A stretch of DNA of 64,000 bases from Macrostomum lignano (lineage: Eukaryota): the NCBI GenBank assembly GCA_002269645.1, contig NIVC01001797.1:1-64000 (forward strand), read 5' to 3'. Shown piece after piece: positions 1-55,118 of this stretch; position 1 is the stretch's first letter; every line of letters begins with the position of its first letter. Below the pieces are notes generated by a model. It had not been told where the DNA came from. It made no database searches and saw only the letters and a program-made list of their open reading frames with translations. The position numbers and the translations under genes are program-made.

Positions 1-3000
1 TGACTGCCTACCAACAGAAGGCCTGTGTCAGCAAGGCTATTCGGGTGTCAAGAGCAGCCGTAAAGTTCATATTCGAGCCGCCGCATGCGGGACAGTACGC
101 CCTGGCCATCAGCTCTGGCGTTACGTGTCAGATGAAAGATTAAAAGGCAGCACGTTTGTCACTTACGCTGTTCACAGTCACAGAGCTGGGTCTCAGCCAA
201 TTTTATCCCGGATGGCCATGAAGATCTGAACGAATTCGGCTCCGTCAAGAAATGCGTGAAGAGGGGCTCAGCTCAGATGAGTCAGGCGAACTGAGGGCAC
301 GCCAATGGAGAAGCAACTTTCGAGATTACTGCACTAGAAGACAGGTTTGGCATAAGGTGAACACTATTGTTAAATTTCGTACGCTTCTACTAAAATTGAA
401 GGTTAGAATACTTCGAATACAGGTTTCTATTAGCAGGAAATTGGCAGCATAGTAGGCAATTATGAGAAGAGACACTAAAATAGAGACTGTAGCATTATTT
501 CTTACTTTTGAAATACAGGCGTAGCTACTGAACTATTACCAATTGCAGAAATCTGATGTGCCAAGCGCTGGTCCGGACAACAAGCCCCTGCCGACGAGCA
601 GCGTGCTCGTGTGGCGCGACATTCACCGCAACGCCTTCCTGTTCCTGGCGCCCGATTCCGGCTACTACGCTCTGGTGCTCTACGAGAACGGTCGGCCCGT
701 CGGCCAGTTCCTGGTGGACGCCAGCAGCGAAGCCAAGGACGGCGCGAGCTTCCCGCTGCCCGACTGAGCCGCGTCGGAGGTCTCGGACTCGCCGCTGCAA
801 GCAAGGCGAACGGGGAGGCTGTCGGCTGGTGCCACTGAGCCACCAAACGCCGTACGTTCGAACCGAAGAGTTCGAGCTGGCGATGCGCTTCGGTGTTGAT
901 GGCGCAGGCGAAGAAGGCGACGCAGGCATCGATCTGAAGTCGGAGATGCTGGGTATCGGAGCAGACGGAGGGACCGAGTCGGTCGGCGACTACTCGTTAG
1001 TGAGCGGTGTCGAGGGCGGCGGCTTCGAGGTGCGGTGCCGGTTCCCGAGAGCGGGCCACTACCTGCTACGCCTGTCGTTCCGAGAGAGCGGCGCGAGACT
1101 GGCGCCCGTACTTCACGTACTTCGTGCGAGCGGTGGGCCAGCTGGACGGATCTGCATCCGCGTTTCCGAGCCTCGGTGCGGACTGGCCGGTCGGCGGAGC
1201 GCTCATCGAGCCGCTGGACCGCACGCTGTCCGTTGGACAGCCGACGCCGATCCGCCTCCGTTCGAGGACGCCACAGCTGTCGGCGCTGTGGAGGTGGTCG
1301 ATGAGCGAAGCGGCAGTCGGGAGCCGTTGAGTCGCGACCCGCAGGACCCGCGGTTGTGGTTCGGGTCCGTGACGGCATCTGCGGGTAACACCGATGGAGC
1401 GAACACTGCGGGGAGCGGCGGCGTGACGGTGGTGGCCCGTGTCAACGACGGCGTTGAGAACACAGCTTGTAAAGTTCGACGTTGAGTCGGAGAGCAGCGC
1501 AGAGGCCAAGGCGGCGGCACTGCGCGAAGCTCGGGAGCTAAACGAGCGACGTCGGGTGGCCGAGGAGAATCGGCAGCGGAAACAGGAGAACCGACACCGC
1601 CGCGATAAGGGACTGGAGTCGCTGCCTGTTTGGGTACTTAAAATTGTTCTGCCATCGGTTTTATCTCGAAATGCATTTGTTCGAAATATTTTTGGTATTT
1701 TTTATCCTTTTCCTGACAGAGTCACGCTGAGGTGAGAGCTGCTGCCGATTTGGCTGCAAAAAGGCTGGCCTTGGCGTACGAGAAAGAAGAAAAAAGAGCA
1801 AAAGCTTTTGCGAAATCAGCTGCGGCAGAAAGAGCTCAGCTCAGAGCCTAGCAGCAGCAAAAGCAGCGGCTGAAGCCAAAGCGGCTTTGAAAGCGGCAGC
1901 AATGGAGGCATCAAAGTTGGCGGCTTTAGCACTCGCGGTGTCGAGGGCGGTGGCCGAGTCCCAATCGGCAGTATTGGCGGCTGCTGATGAGGAACTGGAA
2001 ACAAAGACCGCGGCTGATGCGAAGGATATCTCGGCGGCATCGTATCGATCGGAAATGACTGAGAAGGCGGCTGTCAAAGCCAAATTAGCGGCTGAGTCAG
2101 CGAACGACGTGGCAGCCGAATTGCAGGCGCTTGCAGCTGCAGCAGCAGAAGAAAAAGTGACTGCCAGTTCGGCAGCTGATGCGGCTTCAAAAGCGGCTGA
2201 GGCTGCAGCCTTCGATGCGGAGATCGCCGGTTCTCCGCTACCCGACGAGGCTGCAAAGTTTGCATCATCAGCGTCGCACGAAGCCGAAGCTGCTGCCAGG
2301 GCAGTCACCGAGATCGCTGCAAAGTCAGCCACCGAGGCCTCCATCGCGAAGAGGGGAGCCCGCATGGCGGCTGCTTCGGCGGAGACGGCAGCAAAGTCAG
2401 CTGCGGTTGCGGCTGCTGCAGCGCAGGAGGCCACAGAAGCGATTGCGGCGGAAAAAGCTGAGCTGAATTATTTGATTGCTGAGCTGGACGTGGCCTTGTT
2501 GGACCGAAAGTTAACTCGGGTGCGCAAGGCCGTTGAGTCGTTGGAGGCTCGCGAAAAGGAGCTGCGCGGCAGTCAGTCGAGAAAGCTGAAGGAGGCACAA
2601 CAGACTTTAACGGCGCTACAGAATAGAAAAGGTTCTGTTTTTCTGTTGACAAAACAAGTGGCAGTTGTGCTTAAATTCTGATGTATTACTGAAGGTAGCT
2701 TGTATTGTAAAACCGTCACATTAATTTGGCCAGTGAAAATTTCGATCCGTGCTCTATCCAACCTCCGCAGACCTCCGGGACGCCATGGCGGACGCTCAGC
2801 GAGCCCGCAGCACCGACCGCCTGCGCGCGTTGGTGCACCGTCTGGAGGCTGAAGCCGAGTCGCAGCCGCTGACGGAGGCGCAGCTGGCGCTGTTCCGCGA
2901 GGACCTGCGGCTCGCCAGAGAGGCCATCCAGCGAGATGACAAGCTGAAGCGAATTCCCTCACACCGGCTGGAGATGAGTCCGAAGAGTCTGTCCGAGCTG

Positions 3001-3983
3001 AAGCAGTACAGCCGGCCAGTGGAAACGGTGCACCGGACGGTGCAGGCGCTGCTGCTGCTGCTCGGGTACTACGAAAAGCGCACACGGGTGAGTCAAGGAC
3101 TACCCAAGTAGAAGGGCGGGAAACTACATTTTCGGGGAACTTTTTGAGAGGCTTGTTTTATTGAAGAAATACATTACGGAGAATGGAGATTTTCATTTTT
3201 TCAGCGTAAAATTTGTAATGATCCATTTGATGGCGGACAAACCCAATGATCATCTTTTGATACGACTTGATTTTCTGTTAGTTCTATAGATATTCGTAGA
3301 GCTTTTTTGTTCAGAAAGTTTGTATTTTGTGTTAATTTTATGAGCGCAATCCTAATTACATGTCCAAACATCGTAAAAATGACACAACTTAATTCATTCG
3401 CAATTTCGCATTGAGGGCGGAGAAGCTTTTTAAATGCTAGGTCGGTGTGTAGTGTACAGAGTGCAGAGCTTGTGTTCTATAGATTGTACTGTGCAGTCAT
3501 TTTGCTGCCCTCACTGGGTCTGTTTACTCGTGAACTTCTCCACGTTACCAACAGAAGTGGCACCGCTGCCAGCCGCTGTTGAAGAGCATCAACAAGTTTG
3601 TCGCGGAGTTTCAGCCGCGCTTCGTTGATCCGCGCATCGCCGCCCGAAGTTCGGAGATTCTGGGCAGCATCGACAAGCGCGAGATCGCCCTGCAGAGCGC
3701 TGCCGCCTTCGCCTTCTACCAATGGGTTCGTTTGAGGAATTTTTCTTGACAATGAGAGTGCAGCATGGCAGCCTGACTCCTTCATCAATCAATTTTACTC
3801 CAGGCGGTCAGGACCACGCAGTCCATCAAGGATGCGACCTCAGTGGACAGTTTTGTTCCAGCCAGCATGGTTCAGCAAAGGTGGATCCTTCGGGTCACGA
3901 TGGAGGAGGACTCTGCGTTGGACTTTCAAGACAAGGGCATTCGCAAGAAGAGTGCACGTCGTCCTCGGACTTCAAAAATTTGA
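1..3983 (+). CDS. KY/hillarin-type (transglutaminase-like family) gene, paralogue 1; 5' end lies outside the window. Ig-like beta repeats, Ala-rich helical region, C-terminal dynein-MTBD-like domain. Several frameshifts in 1-1900
   Basis: Exons approx 1-344, 519-1629, 1720-2631, 2771-3087, 3555-3725, 3804-3983 (TGA), with GT-AG borders. Motifs FEPPHAGQYALAI, FLFLAPDSGYYALVLY, CRFPRAGHYLLRLSF and GALIEPLDRTL resemble the C-terminal repeats of KY/hillarin proteins. The last three exons are in frame and colinear with paralogue 2 (LSELKQYSRP..VQALLLLLG / KWHRCQ / FYQW). Confidence 0.7.
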
Positions 3984-4480
3984 ACTTTAAACTCGCTCTT
4001 CTTTGCTAAAAGTAGGGCAAAGAGTATTTTAAAACTGAATTTTCAAACGCATTGAAATAATGGGAAATCATCTCAAGTGAAATTTTGCAGTCAAGTTTAT
4101 CAATCAATTGAGACTACCAGATTCAAACCTGTCGAATTCCATATGATTTTGTAAACATTACAGAAGATTTTGACTTTTTCATCGTTTTAGCAACATTCGT
4201 GTACTGTACGTGCTTTAAATACCTGCCGAAGTTTTTTCTGTGCAAACGAAAGTCCAAGACTGCCACAGACAACTTTTGGGCTTTCGACCACAGACGAAAT
4301 TTTGTCGGGTATTATAGAATTTAACCAGCACGAGTGAACGTGAAGGAATCCCATTGACATATGGCCAAGCATTCTTAAATGGAATTTACTGCACGGCTTG
4401 GGATTTACTGCACAGTCGCGTTATCTATCTATGTCTATGGCTAAAACCAGAAGAATGCTTTGCCCATAAATCAATGAATC

Positions 4481-4557
4481 TATCACTAGGTTTCGAGTGC
4501 GTAAATAGTCTTAGCACGAGTGCCATAGACTATTTACGCACTCGAAACCTAGAGATA
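4481..4557. repeat. Near-perfect inverted repeat (26-bp perfect arms)
   Basis: CTAGGTTTCGAGTGCGTAAATAGTCT (4486-4511) pairs with AGACTATTTACGCACTCGAAACCTAG (4527-4552). Confidence 0.9.
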
Positions 4558-4584
4558 AATCTACCATTGTTAGATGAGTCATCG

Positions 4585-6440
4585 CAGGGACAACTAAAAC
4601 CCTCGGGACGCAAAACGAGCCAATTCATGGCAAAAAATCTGAGGGGCTCGCTTAAAAGTATTGTTCTATGGCTTTTTCAAGTCTTCTCTGCTATCAGGCA
4701 AATTAAAATTGCTTTAGTTGCGGCCAGCAGTGAAGCTAAGCTGAACTATATCAAGAAAAGCATTTTTTATTCACTTGATGAAATGCCAAGAAAGTGCAGC
4801 GTATTTCCGTGCTCGTCAAATTACAACTCTGAAGCCGTTCGAACACGGACATTTGCGTTTCCCAGAGATCCACAGGAGCGAGAGCGATGGAGAAAGGCGC
4901 TGCCAAATATTCTCCAGGTAAGAAACCAGATCATTTGCTGTCATTACTGCTGCATAATTCCGCTTCAATTCTGCATGCCAGTCTCGTCCAAACAACTTGA
5001 AACCCAAAATTTATTATTTTAGAGAGTGACTGACAATATGGGCGTGTGCGTAAAGCATTGGCCAAGCGATGCTCCAATGGTCAAGAAAAACTCTACCGAA
5101 AGGCCAATTAATCCTCCTTCTGTTTTTAATGGAGTTCCTAGCTCGTGTTTTGTTCAGAACCAAGGTACGTAACTTAAAGATTGCTCAACACTAAGCGTCT
5201 ATATCGATTTTGCCGCTCACAATTATCTTACTTTTATTTTTACTCGTATTTTAGACCAGGACCGACAGGCCGAAAAGCGCGGTGTTCTTTCTGACGCGAG
5301 GTGCGGCGACATCGATGAGATGGACGCTTTTCAGCTGCTTGATTTTTTGCCGGCATGGGAAAGTTTTCGAGCTGAGGTGAAAAATTCGGATGTCGTATCT
5401 CGACATGCACTAAACACAGCTATTCTGAACGAAGACGTTTACTTGTTTACGTTAGATAAAGATGGAGACCTCTCTGTTCGAATTTTTGTCCCACCCAACT
5501 TTCTGATTCGTGCATTCAAACTGCATACACCGATTTCGGTTCGAGACTTGTTGGGATTTCAACCGACACTCAAGCGCTGGATGCTGTTGTCGTGCAGTGC
5601 AAAAATTCCGACGCCAATCCCCAAAGTGAAGTCGAAGCGTTTGTTAGTAGAATCAGTGATGATATAGATTCTGACTCTGATTTGGATCCGTCGCTTCAGT
5701 TTTTGATTCGACAACTTAGCCTTACATTAGTAAATCGGAACAATCGCCGCTATGACATTTCACTAGTGCGACAGTCAGCATTGCTCTACTTGATCAGTAG
5801 TTCGGCTTACTCTTACCTACGGAAGCTATTGCCATTGCCTCATCCCCGAACGCTGCAGCTGCAACTAGCAGGTACAGGAGAAGTTGGCACAGAAACCGAC
5901 GCAGCCGGTGTGATCCAGTCAGTTTTTGCTAGTCTATCAGGAGCTCAGCGAAACTGCGTAATATGTTTGACGAAATGTACATACAACCGTCCGTTCGATA
6001 TCGATGCCGTCACCTTCTGGGTCGAGCCGTCGACGATCCGGACCAGGTTCCTTTATGTACGAGCTACTGACTGTTTGTGTCGTCTTGTCCTTGGAGTTCC
6101 GTATTTGCTTCTATCTTCTTGCCGTTGGAGTTTCATCTTCGCTTTCATCCTTTATATTCTTGCCGTTGGAGTTATATCTTTGCTTTCATCTTTTATCTTC
6201 TTGCCGTTGGAGTTTTTTTGTTGATATGGCGGTTACTTTATTGTAAATAATTATATCACTGGTTCCTATTCTTTAAATTAAATACTCGACATTGCCTCGC
6301 TTTACTATTTAATCTAACCGTTAATGCCTGATAGCAGAGAAGACTTGAAAAAGCCATAGAACAATACTTTTAAGCGAGCCCCTCAGATTTTTTGCCATGA
6401 ATTGGCTCGTTTCGCGTCCCGAGGGTTTTAGTTGTCCCTG
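4585..6440 (+). mobile_element. Internally deleted P-superfamily (THAP9-like) DNA transposon, 1856 bp, 116-bp TIRs
   Basis: TIRs 4585-4700 and 6325-6440 (CAGGGACAACTAAAACC..., one mismatch seen). GAGTCATCG directly flanks both ends (4576-4584, 6441-6449). Encloses a THAP + P-type transposase remnant. Confidence 0.9.
4783..6050 (+). pseudogene. THAP-domain P-element-like transposase, frameshifted and truncated after the first catalytic Asp
   Basis: Exons 4783-4917, 5023-5164, 5255-~6050. THAP motifs MPRKCSVFPC..FAFPRD..RERW, CVKHW, PPSVF. P-transposase motifs SALLYLISSSAYSYLRKLLPLPHPRTL and (frameshifted) DEMYIQPSVRY..LLG. Frameshifts near 5590 and 5965. Confidence 0.85.
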
Positions 6441-7352: not shown

Positions 7353-8405
7353 TTATACACCAGGCGTCTTCCAGCACATGACGATATGGCGACCAATCTT
7401 GAAGAAAAATGACAGCCCAGGCTCGTGGCTATAGCTGGCCCAGTACTGTCCCGTAACCATGACAACGTGCCAAAGCTTGCCGAACTGGCCGTCCAGCTGC
7501 TGCTTCAGCCGGCCAGCGACATCTTTCTCATCTTTGCCGCGTCTCTGGGCGTCGCGAAATATTTCAGTCAGGTCCACCTGCATCTCTAGGCCCATGCTGG
7601 AGGCGATGACGGTGACGTCCTCCGGCAGCCGGTTATTCCTCAGACACTCGGCCTTGAGCTGGTTGAGTCGGTAGATTCGCCTATTTTAGGAAAATGCGAT
7701 GGGTTGCCTTCGTGCGTTACCACAAGTTCATTCGACGCATTGCACGAAGTTGGGTTTTGCGAGCTAATGATGACGCAGCAATAGATACTATGTGCTCTAA
7801 AGAATAAAAAGTTCAATTGAATCATGAAAAACAGTATACAGTCTTACGCTTGCTTCGGATTGAGTCCCAGAACGTTGCAGTATTCGTCCAGTGTAATCGC
7901 GCCGTCATCGTTCTCATCAAATAGCTTCATCCATTTCTGAAAAAGCGAATTCGGTAAATGCCATGACTTGGATGTTTGTGTGTAACTATTACTCAATACT
8001 ATCTGCGAGTCTGATGAATGCAGCTAAATAACATTTCAGCGACCATTTTACCTACCTTGATACCAACATAAGATCTGTTAGATCAGTTTAAACCCTTAAA
8101 TACCGGAGTCCGGATCACCGTGTGAATAATTACACAAAGCATTGGAAACACTGGAAGCTACAAACCTCGCCAAAATTGGCCTCAAACTGGCTGCTGCTGG
8201 TCATGTAGGCCGCTAATTCATCCGGTGTGATGGACTCGCTCCGATCCTTGTCGACCGCAAAGAACGCATCAAGGAAGGGATTCTGTGCAGCTGCCTCCTC
8301 TGCTGCGACGCGTCCCGGTGACAACGGCGGTGGAGCAGGCGATGTTGAGCCCGAAGCGGAGGCAGTGGAGTGCGCTGGCGACACAGAGAGCGACATGCTT
8401 CGCAT
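7353..8405 (-). CDS. Tegument allergen-like (TAL) protein: two EF-hands plus a dynein-light-chain-like domain, ~218 aa, 3 exons
   Basis: Exons 8405-8166, 7936-7848, 7680-7353 join in frame. EF loops DKDRSESITPDE and DENDDGAITLDE. C-terminus LPEDVTVIASSM..LDGQFGKLWHVVMVTGQYWASYSHEPGLSFFF..MCWKTP closely matches the Sm22.6/SmTAL pattern ([29 protein letters not shown]..WRTP). Confidence 0.9.
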
Positions 8406-10418: not shown

Positions 10419-13400
10419 ATGCCAGAAGGAAACATTTTACAAGTACTAGACTACTACAAAAATTATGCGCTAGAAGGAGATGAAATTCCATTAAATAACT
10501 ATCTTTTGAGTTCCCCAAAAGGATTTCCAACTTTGCGCAGCCTGGTTGACAGTCAGCTGCAAGCTGCCAAACCGAGTGCGGCGAGGGCCAACCAGCCACA
10601 GCCAACTCCGTGTAGCAGACGAAAAGAAGAGCTGTTTCAGATTCAGAAATTCACCGATATTGATCAGGCAGCAGAGTCGGTGCAACTGAACTGGCAGGAC
10701 GACTGGGAGACGCTTTCTCAGAAATTGTTTCGGAATTCGACCGGCGATCTCGAAAAAGTGCGCTCTGCTTTTGTGTTTACCTGCAGAGACTGGAACAACG
10801 GACTGCCAGCTCGCAACAAAGAGAGCTCAGCGTATAGGCTTATTCGAGAGAGAAACTATGCAGAGATTTTTGAGAACTTGGTCAGGTAAGGACTGCTCAT
10901 TCTGAAGAGTTCAGGTTCAGTCATTCAGTTTGTTAAGGAAATTAATTTTTGTAGCAAATTGTGTGTAAAGATTGTTGAAGAAGAGCACGTGAAGCCTGTA
11001 TGTACGATTTGATGCGAGAGTGCCTTGAAAGTGCTAAATTTTTATTTTAGAAAAGAGACTATCGCATTGGGAGTGAAACCTAGTAGATTAGCCTCTTAGC
11101 AGACCAGTGTCTTAGTTGATCAGTGTCTTAGTAGACCAGTGTCTTAGCAGACCAGTGTCTTAGCAGACCAGTGTCTTAGTAGACCAGTGTCTTAGTAGAC
11201 CAGTGTCTCAGTAGACCAGTGTCTTAGTAGACTAGTGTCTTAGTAAACCAGTGTCTTAGTAAACCAGTGTCTTAGTAAACCAGTGTCTTAGTAAACCAGT
11301 GTCTTAGTAAACCAGTGTCTTAGTAAACCAGTGTCTTAGTAAACCAGTGTCTTAGTAAACCAGTGTCTTAGTAGACCAGTGTCTTAGTAGACCAGTGTCT
11401 TAGTAGACCAGTGTCTTAGTTGATCAGTGTCTTAGTAGACCAGTGTCTTAGTAAACCAGTGTCTAAGTAGATCAGTGTCTTGGTAGACAAGTGTCTTAGT
11501 AGACCAGTGTCTTAGTAGACCAGTGTCTCAGTAAACCAGTGTCTAAGTAGATCAGTGTCTTAGCAGACCAGTGTCTTAGTTGATCAGTGTCTTAGTAAAC
11601 CAGTGTCTTAGTAAACCAGTGTCTTAGTAAACCAGTGTCTTAGTAAACCAGTGTCTTAGTAAACCAGTGTCTTAGTAAACCAGTGTCTTAGTAAACCAGT
11701 GTCTTAGTAAACCAGTGTCTTAGTAGACCAGTGTCTTAGTAGACCAGTGTCTTAGTAGACCAGTGTCTTAGTTGATCAGTGTCTTAGTAGACCAGTGTCT
11801 TAGTAAACCAGTGTCTAAGTAGATCAGTGTCTTGGTAGACAAGTGTCTTAGTAGACCAGTGTCTTAGTAGACCAGTGTCTCAGTAAACCAGTGTCTAAGT
11901 AGATCAGTGTCTTAGCAGACCAGTGTCTTAGTAGACCAGTGTCTTAGTTGATCAGTGTCTTAGTAAACCAGTGTCTTAGTAAACCAGTGTCTTAGTAAAC
12001 CAGTGTCTTAGTAAACCAGTGTCTTAGTAAACCAGTGTCTTAGTAAACCAGTGTCTCAGTAAACCAGTGTCTAAGTAGATCAGTGTCTTGGTAGACAAGT
12101 GTCTTAGTAGACCAGTGTCTTAGTAGACCAGTGTTTTAGTAGACCAGTGTCTTCGCAGACCAGTGTCTTAGTAGACCAGTGTCTTAGTAGACCAGTGTCT
12201 TAGTAAACCAGTGTCCTCGTAGACCAGTGTCTTCGCAGACCAGTGTCTTAGTAGACCAGTGTCTTAGCAGACCAGTGTCTTAGCAGACCAGTGTCTTAGC
12301 GGATCAGTGTCTTAGTAGACCAGTGTCTTAGCAGACCAGTGTCTTAGCGGACCAGTGCACCGAGAGTCTTGAGGCTCGATCGCACCTCCATAAAATGGAG
12401 TAAATTTTTGCGTGATCACGCAACTTGTACATATTCTTTAGTCCCTTTGTGCGTGAGTGCTGCGACTTGACGGTTCATCTAGCGTAGCGGTGCACTAACC
12501 AAGAGTGACTTAGTGAGCCTTTTCCCATAGTAATGAAAGTATAGCAAACGCAGGAAAATATTTCAGAGCCGGAGGCGTACCAATAGAACGAATCGAAGGC
12601 TGGAAGAAGTCTGCAGACTCCAAAGTTGGCTTCCATGTCAGACGATCGGTAAATCCTTGGCACGCCTGCTTCGTGAGCGGAGAATGGCGACTGGTTGACG
12701 TCCACTGGGCTGCCTCGTCGGTATTCAGCAGCCGCACTGGCAGATACCGCGAGCTCGACAAAGATGGCGAGTTGTCCCAGACCCTGACAGCCAGTGAGAC
12801 CCCTCAGATTGAGGAGAAGTTCGGCCGCAACGAGTTTTTCTTTCTAACTGATCCCGAGAAGCTGGTAATGAGCCACTACCCGGACGATAGGAGCTGGCAG
12901 CTGTGTAAGAAGCCGATCAAGTTCGAGCAGTTCGAGCAGATGCCGCACTATTTTGCTGGCTCTGAGCAGGCCATGCCGCACTGCTGGCAGGTGGAGCCGC
13001 TCAACTATCTGAAAAATGTCATTCTAGCTGAAGAGGAAGGCCGAGTTGAGATTCTTTTCAGGTAATTTATTTTACAATTTTGGACGTGCAAACTTTTCAA
13101 CAGCTCGTCGTACACCCGTACAAAGTGCCGATTGGAATGGATATTGCAGAGTGCCTGACGCCGAGCTGCTTCGAGATTTAGAATTCGATGCCAAGGTCAG
13201 CATCGCCAAAAGGTGCTTGTCGAGTTCTGATGCGCCAGCATCCAACAGGTTGAAACATGGCAGAATCATTCACTGCGACCGGCTGGGTCCTGCACCATCG
13301 GACATTGTCCAGGTTGTGTTTCGGTCACCTTGCGCTGGCAAGTTCGCTCTGACAGTTCGAATTAAAAAGAAGTATGGAGGCAGCGGCTGGGCTCGACTGG

Positions 13401-13510
13401 CCACCTACATTGTGCACTGTCCTGTGGTAGGTGTCCCGTGGTTTGTCTGCCTCAGTTTGTCTTTCCTTAGTCTATAGGGAAAGCCATGTGTTTCTCTGTC
13501 ATCAGCATTG

Positions 13511-13607
<97 letters not shown>

Positions 13608-15133
13608 TATCATCATCATCATACTGTGCAATTTTATTTTCAACATTACGAGCGTATTAGAGATCGCCTACTGAAGAGTAGCAAGTAAAGAATTTTAAGC
13701 GACTTATGTTGCGTGCGAAAGGCGCACTAAAAGTTTTGAATTATTAAAGTTTATTACAATTTATAAAAAAATTGAAACCATCTGCTTCAAAAAGCAGTCC
13801 TTGTCTATCGTGAGTTACACTTGCACTTTCCTGCTAATCTGTGAAATTATATTGTCAATGCAGGTATCTAAAGAATCAAAATTATCAAAGTCATCTCAAC
13901 CGCCAAATCCAGAACCAGAGTCAGAGTGCGGCCCAAATCTCAAAACAAGGATCAGTGATCATAGATCCGCCAAATCAAGACACAAATCCAAAGCCATATT
14001 CAAGGCCAAATTCAGATCTAGATGCAACTCCAAAACCAGAGCCAAAACCATACATCTGGAGCCAAAACCGGAGTTCAAGCCCTTTGGGTCGAAAGTTTCC
14101 TATGGGAAATTTGACCAGAGAGCAACTGGCTCAGTTGCGCAGCTACCCGAAGCCGCCAAAATGGGAATTCAAGGCGATCAAAGCCATACTGCTCATGCTG
14201 GGCTTTTACGAAGGACGGAGCAACGTGAGTGGCAGGACGGTTTTGTAGGGTGGCAACAATTTCAAGCATACGAAACGTTTGCTAATTTAAATTTCAGAAA
14301 TGGGTCCGCTGTCAGCAACTAATCTCTGCCATACCTCAGGCGGCCAACGATTTAATTATCGAATCCGTTCATCCGGAAATCGCTGCCAGATGCCTGCAAC
14401 TCGTTCAGTCGAAATCTGGCACGCCAACGGCCAAGGATAACCCGGAAGAGAAAGCTTCGTATATCTTCAGGGAGTGGGTGAGTTTGCGATGCAATTGCGA
14501 TGTGACTGAGGGTCAGGGCATGAGATAGGTGTCGGGAGGGGCAGAGGGGCAGCGCGTGAGGTGGGTGTCGGGAGGGGCAGGGGGAGCACGTGGAGGTGAG
14601 TGTCGGGAGGGGCAGGGGGCGTGTGGAGGTGAGTGTCGGGAGGGGCAGGGGGCGCGTGGAGGTGGGTGTCGGGAGTGGCAGGGGGGCGCGTGGAGATGGG
14701 TGGTCGAGAGGGGCAGGGGAGCGCGTGGAGGTGGGGTGTCGGGAGGGGCAGGAGGAGCGCGCAAGGTGTGGGTATCGGGAACGGGTCTTTAGTTTCAATT
14801 TATTCGCTGAAATAAAATTTCTGTCAGAACTTTATGTATGCAATCTAACATTAAATTCTCAAGGTTGAAAAGAACGCCAACGCAGTCAAGGAGGTGACGC
14901 CGCCCGGCGATTTCAAAGCAGCTGACAAACAGCGGCAGGTGCAGCTGTTCGGCATCACACCCGAGGAGGAGGCCCATTGGGACTGGGAGGACAATATAAA
15001 AAAGTCTGAAGTGGCCCAGAAATTCATCTGCTTTTGCGACTATTGTCACGTTGCGATTTATAATAACGATTTAAAGATCCACCTGCACTGCAACGTGTCC
15101 AGAGCGAATGGCTTGCGCAAAAATGCGCTGTGA
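10419..15133 (+). CDS. KY/hillarin-type gene, paralogue 2: degenerate transglutaminase-like core, one Ig-like repeat, Pro-rich linker, dynein-MTBD-like domain, C-terminal CxxC..H..C motif
   Basis: Exons 10419-10885, 12567-13061, 13150-13426, 13864-14224, 14298-14477, 14864-15133. Motifs DLEKVRSAF, NPWHACFVSGEWRLVDVHW and EFFFLTDPEKLVMSHYPDDRSWQL are typical of KY/hillarin. Exon 4 needs a net frameshift, and the start codon is uncertain. Confidence 0.8.
11099..12357. repeat. 16-bp minisatellite (AGACCAGTGTCTTAGT)n in intron 1 of paralogue 2
   Basis: Read directly; variant units recur in longer blocks. Confidence 0.95.
13511..13622. repeat. (CAT)n microsatellite, intronic
   Basis: Read directly; source of the poly-His and poly-Ile artefact ORFs. 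Confidence 0.95.
14520..14765. repeat. ~32-bp G-rich intronic minisatellite
   Basis: Unit GGAGGTGAGTGTCGGGAGGGGCAGGGGGCGCGT. Confidence 0.9.

Positions 15134-16832: not shown

Positions 16833-34568
<17,736 letters not shown>

Positions 34569-38906: not shown

Positions 38907-55118
<16,212 letters not shown>

Follow-up and report, generated by a model that had tools for sequence, protein, structure and literature searches.

A motorless homologue of the dynein microtubule-binding domain at the C-terminus of a KY/hillarin-type protein of Macrostomum lignano

The 64-kb stretch of Macrostomum lignano DNA analysed here (the window; contig NIVC01001797.1, with all coordinates of genes 1 and 2 given as window positions) opens inside a gene, gene 1, whose protein ends in a module that we regard, with high confidence, as an evolutionary homologue of the microtubule-binding domain (MTBD) of dynein heavy chains. 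Homology to the dynein MTBD is established by matches of family profiles, together with an AlphaFold model and its Foldseek ranking. The fusion of this module to KY-type proteins is likewise established, and the fused architecture was shown to be conserved across several phyla. To our knowledge, the MTBD is normally regarded as exclusive to dynein heavy chains, in which its affinity is set by the motor through the stalk; what gene 1 presents is a known domain placed, without its motor, in a conserved setting that is undescribed. Our overall reading, which we consider probable, is that gene 1 encodes a KY/hillarin-type protein whose C-terminal MTBD homologue would serve as a passive, non-enzymatic microtubule tether.

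Gene 1 and its dynein-like C-terminus

The module is encoded by the last three exons of gene 1, located at 2771-3087, 3555-3725 and 3804-3983 on the forward strand. Every border of these exons is of the AG...GT type, and they join in frame to end at a TGA stop codon (3981-3983), yielding the spliced peptide ...LEMSPKSLSELKQYSRPVETVHRTVQALLLLLGYYEKRTR|KWHRCQPLLKSINKFVAEFQPRFVDPRIAARSSEILGSIDKREIALQSAAAFAFYQW|AVRTTQ...SKI*. An earlier reading made from the letters of the DNA (the sequence-only reading) had derived this very peptide from the last three exons, and it proved exact; the borders are canonical, and the same junctions are used in an independent NCBI gene model of M. lignano, P0001 (BOX15_Mlig000549g1), which is 100% identical over 172 amino acids (aa).

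Relatives were collected with a seed profile made of the window sequence and a 48%-identical paralogue, P0002 (for which no contig location was found), in an exhaustive HMMER search of 1.84 billion representative proteins. This search returned 136 relatives at E<=1e-3; these are mostly proteins of 700-1800 aa whose C-terminus is no more than a few residues away from the domain. A family alignment and profile of 69 sequences (A2) displays the signature E-[IL]-R-S-Y-x-x-P-P-x-x-V-H-x-V-M-x-A-x-L-L-L-L-G ... W ... Q ... K-R-R ... S-x-G-A-A-x-F-Y-x-W, and a KY-only control profile (A3) was built from 10 sequences, namely the window protein, its paralogue and eight proteins with verified KY architecture. 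Most family members carry a short Gly-containing insert between helices H3 and H4, which is absent from gene 1. The motif P-A-x4-Q-[KR]-x-[IL]-L that follows H6 is conserved and aligns with the start of the second coiled-coil helix (CC2) of dynein.

When the PDB was searched with the A2 profile, the best 60 matches were all dynein heavy chains, always at the MTBD, with the isolated yeast MTBD (6kjn/6kio) scoring best at E = 5e-14. The A3 profile gave 32 matches at E<=0.01, and these again were all dynein MTBDs (best 1.1e-7), in alignments that span the first coiled-coil helix (CC1) and H1-H6 and reach the first part of dynein CC2, into which profile positions up to about 172-185 are aligned. 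As A3 was built from verified KY proteins and still hit only dynein, contamination of the family profile by genuine dynein fragments, and with it circularity, was excluded. In the reciprocal test, the Pfam MT family (PF12777) matched 32 of the 69 A2 members at E<=1 (best 4.8e-7), its gathering score being passed by a single member, P0042 of Oscarella (26 vs 24 bits), while the KY-type members remained below it at 13.7-16 bits. Comparison of A2 with the mouse MTBD by hhalign gave a probability of 96.8% (E = 2.5e-10), and the numbering of the mouse sequence used agrees with published residue names.

The match can be followed exon by exon with the A2 hidden Markov model (HMM). Exon 2771-3087, which this HMM hits at E = 8e-19, encodes a CC1-like helix and MTBD helices H1-H2 (SELKQY..RPVETVHRTVQALLLLLG) and aligns with dynein H1-H2; exon 3555-3725, hit at E = 3e-18, encodes helices H3-H6 (KWHRCQ...SAAAFAFYQW) and aligns with dynein H3-H6, including the invariant W and the S-x-A-A...W motif. 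The last exon, 3804-3983, supplies the end of H6, a short CC2-like stub (P-A-x4-Q-R-x-I-L), an acidic EED..LDF.D tail and the stop codon; this tail is common to the Macrostomum paralogues and specific to the Macrostomum clade. Like the dynein MTBD and stalk (PF12777; PDB 6kjn, 6kio, 3err, 6rzb), the module is a six-helix bundle flanked by CC1/CC2 helices, and the two share, in the same order, the motifs E-[IL]-[RK]-S, P-P, LLLG, W and S-x-[GA]-A...W, followed by P-x3-4-[QL] at the start of CC2. The sequence-only reading had pointed out MTBD-like anchors in dynein order and at similar spacing. In contrast to dynein, the module stands at the extreme C-terminus without an AAA+ motor and its CC2 is a broken stub, while a Tyr after R-S, V-H in H2 and the K-R-R patch are features of the motorless family. 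Only 59 residues follow the H6 Trp of the gene 1 protein, with the CC2 stub taking up about 20-30 of them. Both the long antiparallel CC1/CC2 stalk and the AAA+ ring are absent from the gene 1 module, and no AAA or dynein family was found in the 25 relatives scanned.

The fold was predicted by AlphaFold2 for a 184-aa fragment, using A2 as the alignment and no templates. The resulting model (mean predicted local distance difference test, pLDDT, 94; predicted template modelling score, pTM, 0.86; pLDDT >90 up to about residue 170) predicts six helices packed as a compact bundle on the tip of a coiled-coil helix. After a leading helix come a compact bundle of helices and a long H6 that passes into another, short helix. 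The helices span residues 5-22, 33-40, 47-59, 64-77, 80-85, 94-105 and 109-136, with a break in the helix at 137-146; residues 5-22 correspond to the helix that had been noticed ahead of the domain from the sequence. A Foldseek search of the PDB with this model, the structural check suggested at the outset, placed dynein MTBD or stalk structures at all of ranks 1-21, with probabilities of mostly about 1.0 (lowest 0.84) and target-normalised TM (template modelling) scores of 0.60-0.67 against isolated MTBDs; the next matches were unrelated (probability <0.1, TM about 0.2). The model lies nearer to the high-affinity yeast MTBD (6kjn 0.62, 6kio 0.67) than to the low-affinity one (6kjo 0.49), and this predicted resemblance is no more than a weak hint.

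The KY-type scaffold and the wider family

The remainder of gene 1 is of the KY/hillarin/LTD-1 type (Transglut_core + PF23265), its N-terminal part being homologous to that of a KY-type Macrostomum paralogue, P0006, which combines Transglut_core and three copies of Ig-like_KY with the same C-terminal module. The start of gene 1 lies outside the window on its upstream side, where L001, from the other M. lignano assembly, encodes a KY-type N-terminus and a transglutaminase-like region. This region shows 30% identity to residues 210-508 of P0006 (tblastn, E = 7e-29) and can be aligned to the Transglut_core of P0006, P0016 and P0018. The first exon in the window (1..344, +) continues the open reading frame (ORF) of L001 6499-7443 and encodes part of the KY-type Ig-like region; it differs by 1-nt indels from the other assembly. 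Exon 548..1640 (+), defined from frame translations, covers a further KY-type beta-rich region and the onset of a charged helical linker. It reads free of stops when indel variants of both assemblies are mixed, and a Pfam scan of the gene 1 composite found no match in it. Exon 1720..2631 (+) encodes a linker of ~304 aa, rich in Ala, Glu and Lys and helical, which runs into the stalk-like helix; its ORF is uninterrupted once the extra A of L001 is included at window position 1837, and it joins exon 2771-3087 through a phase-1 intron (G|AC = Asp).

In the gene 1 composite, Ig-like_KY (PF23265) was recovered below threshold (23.2 bits vs a cut-off of 27, E = 8.3e-5), and it is clearly present in P0006 and in relatives from other phyla. 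All 15 of the long relatives with Pfam hits that were examined contain Ig-like_KY, most of them with Transglut_core as well, and relatives are named in their sources as hillarin-like, kyphoscoliosis peptidase or ltd-1-like proteins of molluscs, annelids, amphioxus and Macrostomum. An MTBD fold on a transglutaminase-like/Ig-like scaffold, as the sequence-only reading had it, was thus found both in gene 1 and in relatives from several phyla. Compared with KY, hillarin and LTD-1 themselves, gene 1-type proteins add the long helical linker and the C-terminal MTBD-like module, and mostly lack the catalytic Cys and His. In vertebrates, KY is a Z-disc protein of muscle and is not known to have a coiled coil or an MTBD.

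The module is not restricted to KY-type proteins, and relatives with differing N-termini (P0110, P0063, P0038, P0052 and P0068) were also recovered. In amphioxus, a protein with CLCA and VWA domains, a signal peptide and a strong transmembrane helix (892-910) carries the MTBD-like module at its far C-terminus, and a CD20-like multi-pass membrane protein and a 'mucin-like' single-pass protein end in it as well; in these membrane-protein relatives the module lies on the predicted cytosolic side. A Cyanophora protein with GAF and Dpy-30 motifs, a pairing typical of axonemal proteins, also ends in the module, and a chytrid protein carries it without any known domain. The members come from a sponge, flatworm, molluscs, annelids, amphioxus, a chytrid fungus and a glaucophyte, and we see an even chance that they represent an ancient stand-alone motorless MTBD module used as a general C-terminal microtubule anchor for diverse cargo proteins. 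The motorless module may, in other words, define an undescribed family of microtubule tethers.

Full-text searches of the open-access literature found no description of an MTBD module outside dynein on KY/hillarin/transglutaminase-like proteins, in agreement with the sequence-only reading, which knew of none. Expression studies of oyster and mussel in which a 'kyphoscoliosis peptidase' is mentioned could not be linked to the KY-MTBD subfamily. At current Pfam thresholds the domain goes undetected in almost every KY-type member, so that these proteins are annotated solely as 'KY-like' or 'hillarin-like'. One short stand-alone member, P0172 of Haliotis asinina (356 aa), bears the automatic NCBI name 'cytoplasmic dynein 2 heavy chain 1-like', which indicates that automated pipelines have touched on the dynein similarity; KY-type members, unlike P0172, are named only KY, hillarin or ltd-1-like.

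Possible roles: microtubule tether, repurposed fold or enzyme

In the mechanism that we propose, the module would act as a constitutive, passive microtubule foot with a fixed helix registry, placed at the end of a helical linker of ~300 aa. The transglutaminase-like and Ig-like domains would bind partners rather than catalyse, and the whole protein would function as a microtubule-to-cortex or microtubule-to-cytoskeleton cross-linker or anchor. Loss of the catalytic His and Cys makes the KY part likelier to be a binding scaffold than an enzyme. Septins and an actin-like pattern have been associated with relatives in the KY/hillarin family (PMC3718969), which favours a cross-linker between microtubules and the cortex or cytoskeleton. 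Microtubule binding by the gene 1 module itself is putative, and we rate it at slightly better than an even chance. Basic residues are kept in the family at positions 34, 40, 68 and 71-72, position 40 in H1 being K or R in 84% of cases, and the core has a net charge of +9 in the window protein and is net positive in 71% of members.

Several results weigh against the tether. Taken alone, the C-terminus of the window protein (222 aa) produced nothing but noise in searches of Pfam and of PDB sequences (PhoU, 0.088; a claudin design, 0.068) and had no match to Pfam MT (PF12777) even at E<=10, and the two-sequence profile gave a marginal dynein match only (E = 0.47). An hhalign comparison with a pseudo-consensus was likewise weak and is given no weight. 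The HMM comparison with Pfam MT and the PDB that the sequence-only reading had put forward failed for the single sequence and succeeded for the family profiles, and the assignment of the window protein to the MTBD family is a transitive one, made via those profiles. The Foldseek E-values were modest (0.013-0.6), as was the query-normalised TM of about 0.5, so that the fold evidence supports the sequence evidence and would be insufficient alone. On the scaffold side, Transglut_core was not detected by Pfam in the gene 1 composite, and the exons of gene 1 upstream of 1850 are frameshifted in the window assembly.

Further points of this kind concern the binding surface. The key residues of the mouse dynein MTBD for mutagenesis are K3298, K3299, R3342 and R3382 (PMC6125590). 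Mapped via the mouse sequence, K3298 falls on S32, K3299 on P33, R3342 near K78 and R3382 on L114, so that the contact residues K3298, K3299 and R3382 appear not to be conserved, and family position 32, the K3298 site, is acidic in 72% of members with Asp as the consensus. The family has a conserved basic patch of its own, R82/R83 (K-R-R, in the H4 region), which is lacking in dynein and argues against a binding mode identical to that of dynein. Finally, with CC2 truncated, the tuning of affinity that dynein achieves by sliding CC1 on a long CC2 cannot operate.

The apparent loss of contact residues, the family's own basic patch and the ties of known KY/hillarin relatives to septins and an actin-like pattern (PMC3718969) would all suit a second explanation, in which a true MTBD homologue has been repurposed and binds septins, the actin-filamin network, another filament or a specific protein instead of the microtubule lattice. 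Tubulin binding is, however, the sole known function of the MTBD fold, and the basic residues of H3 and the H1 Arg/Lys at position 40 are retained. Moreover, the model is nearer to the high-affinity than to the low-affinity yeast MTBD, and one member carries the axonemal-type combination of GAF and Dpy-30. We regard repurposing as possible, if rather unlikely.

It is very unlikely that the MTBD-like module serves to bring an active transglutaminase-like peptidase to tubulin tails, in parallel with detyrosination by vasohibins. In favour of such a microtubule-tethered enzyme, transglutaminase-like proteases are known to act on tubulin tails (PMC13406575), Zhang and Aravind have proposed that ciliary transglutaminase-like (TGL) domains remove tubulin modifications (PMC3495828), and a Cys still occupies the catalytic position in gene 1 (GNCSEVF). 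In contrast, among seven aligned transglutaminase-like sequences the catalytic His is absent from all seven, six have another residue in place of the Cys (Tyr in five, His in one) and at least one lacks the Asp. With its catalytic triad lost, an active tubulin-tail peptidase was rejected. Vasohibins and DRC7/CCDC135, a component of the nexin-dynein regulatory complex, were set beside gene 1 by description (PMC13406575, PMC3623635, PMC3495828) and offer a transglutaminase-like fold in a microtubule or axoneme context, as is proposed for the gene 1 protein; vasohibins are catalytically active, however, whereas the KY-MTBD family is apparently inactive, and both vasohibins and DRC7/CCDC135 reach microtubules by means other than an MTBD module.

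An artefact, whether through helices that resemble each other by chance or through a chimera, in the gene model or the assembly, of a KY gene and a dynein fragment, is barely credible and effectively refuted, for although the single sequence has no significant match and indel errors are numerous in the window assembly, the E-values of the profiles are specific for dynein MTBDs, the same architecture occurs in flatworm, mollusc, annelid and amphioxus genomes, three tandem paralogues at the locus share intron positions, and the family has a signature of its own, distinct from that of dyneins.

The locus and the significance of a motorless domain

The KY-MTBD genes of this locus form a tandem array of three paralogues with shared intron positions. 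Gene 2, the shorter tandem paralogue (10419..15133, +), was delineated by A2 hmmsearch of the six-frame translation, ORFs and splice sites, and comprises a TGc-like region, one Ig-like region and the MTBD-like domain; P0006 gave a tblastn match within it at 12556-12948. Its MTBD exons, at about 14105-14224, 14298-14477 and 14864-15133 (+), are separated by introns at the same codon positions as in gene 1. The 3' end of the third paralogue lies upstream of gene 1, at L001 1-1052, and its H3-H6 exon shows 96% DNA identity to window 3586-3736.

The assembly of gene 1 could be compared between sources. Window positions 1-5336 align to contig NIVC01002652.1 at 99.2%, and between window 1-4100 and L001 7085-11200, which represent two M. 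lignano assemblies, there are 34 differing columns, one of them a substitution and 33 of them indels, mostly of a single base. Different exons are broken in each assembly. L001 lacks a C at 2804 and another at 2895, which is why the NCBI model is 'partial', and the window lacks an A at 1837. As the differences are dominated by indels and the frames are restored by choice of variant, the frameshifts between window positions 1 and 1850 probably reflect errors of assembly. That the upstream exons belong to a pseudogene is less likely, given that 33 of the 34 differences are indel columns and that mixed variants reopen the frames.

Between genes 1 and 2, at 7353-7595 (-) and 8130-8405 (-), one ORF encodes a dynein light chain (DLC) type 1, LC8-like, domain (PF01221, E = 4e-15), and a weak EF-hand ORF stands directly upstream of it on the same strand. 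EF-hand plus DLC is the architecture of flatworm tegument-allergen-like (TAL) proteins, and the position of an LC8-like ORF next to MTBD-like genes may be a coincidence. Directly downstream of gene 1, at 4780-6250 (+), fragmented ORFs that match a THAP domain (E = 2.5e-4) and the helix-turn-helix (HTH) domain of P-element transposases (E = 8e-7) look like a degenerate THAP9/P-element-like transposon. The window is also rich in minisatellite arrays with units of 16-107 bp, for example at 11094-12357, 13499-13622, 14528-14761, 31903-32785, 43255-43704, 44099-45211, 47021-47947 and 48808-49742, in addition to (TCA)41 and (TAGA)113. Several of the arrays lie inside gene 2 introns, and arrays rich in purines or pyrimidines account for the extreme skews in GC and AT at 24-26 kb and 44-48 kb.

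If the tether reading is correct, a conserved motorless MTBD on scaffold and membrane proteins would constitute a new class of microtubule-associated protein and would provide a natural experiment on how an MTBD functions at a fixed registry. It would also bear on the question of how dynein acquired its microtubule foot, and would offer a handle on the cell biology of the invertebrate KY/hillarin proteins.

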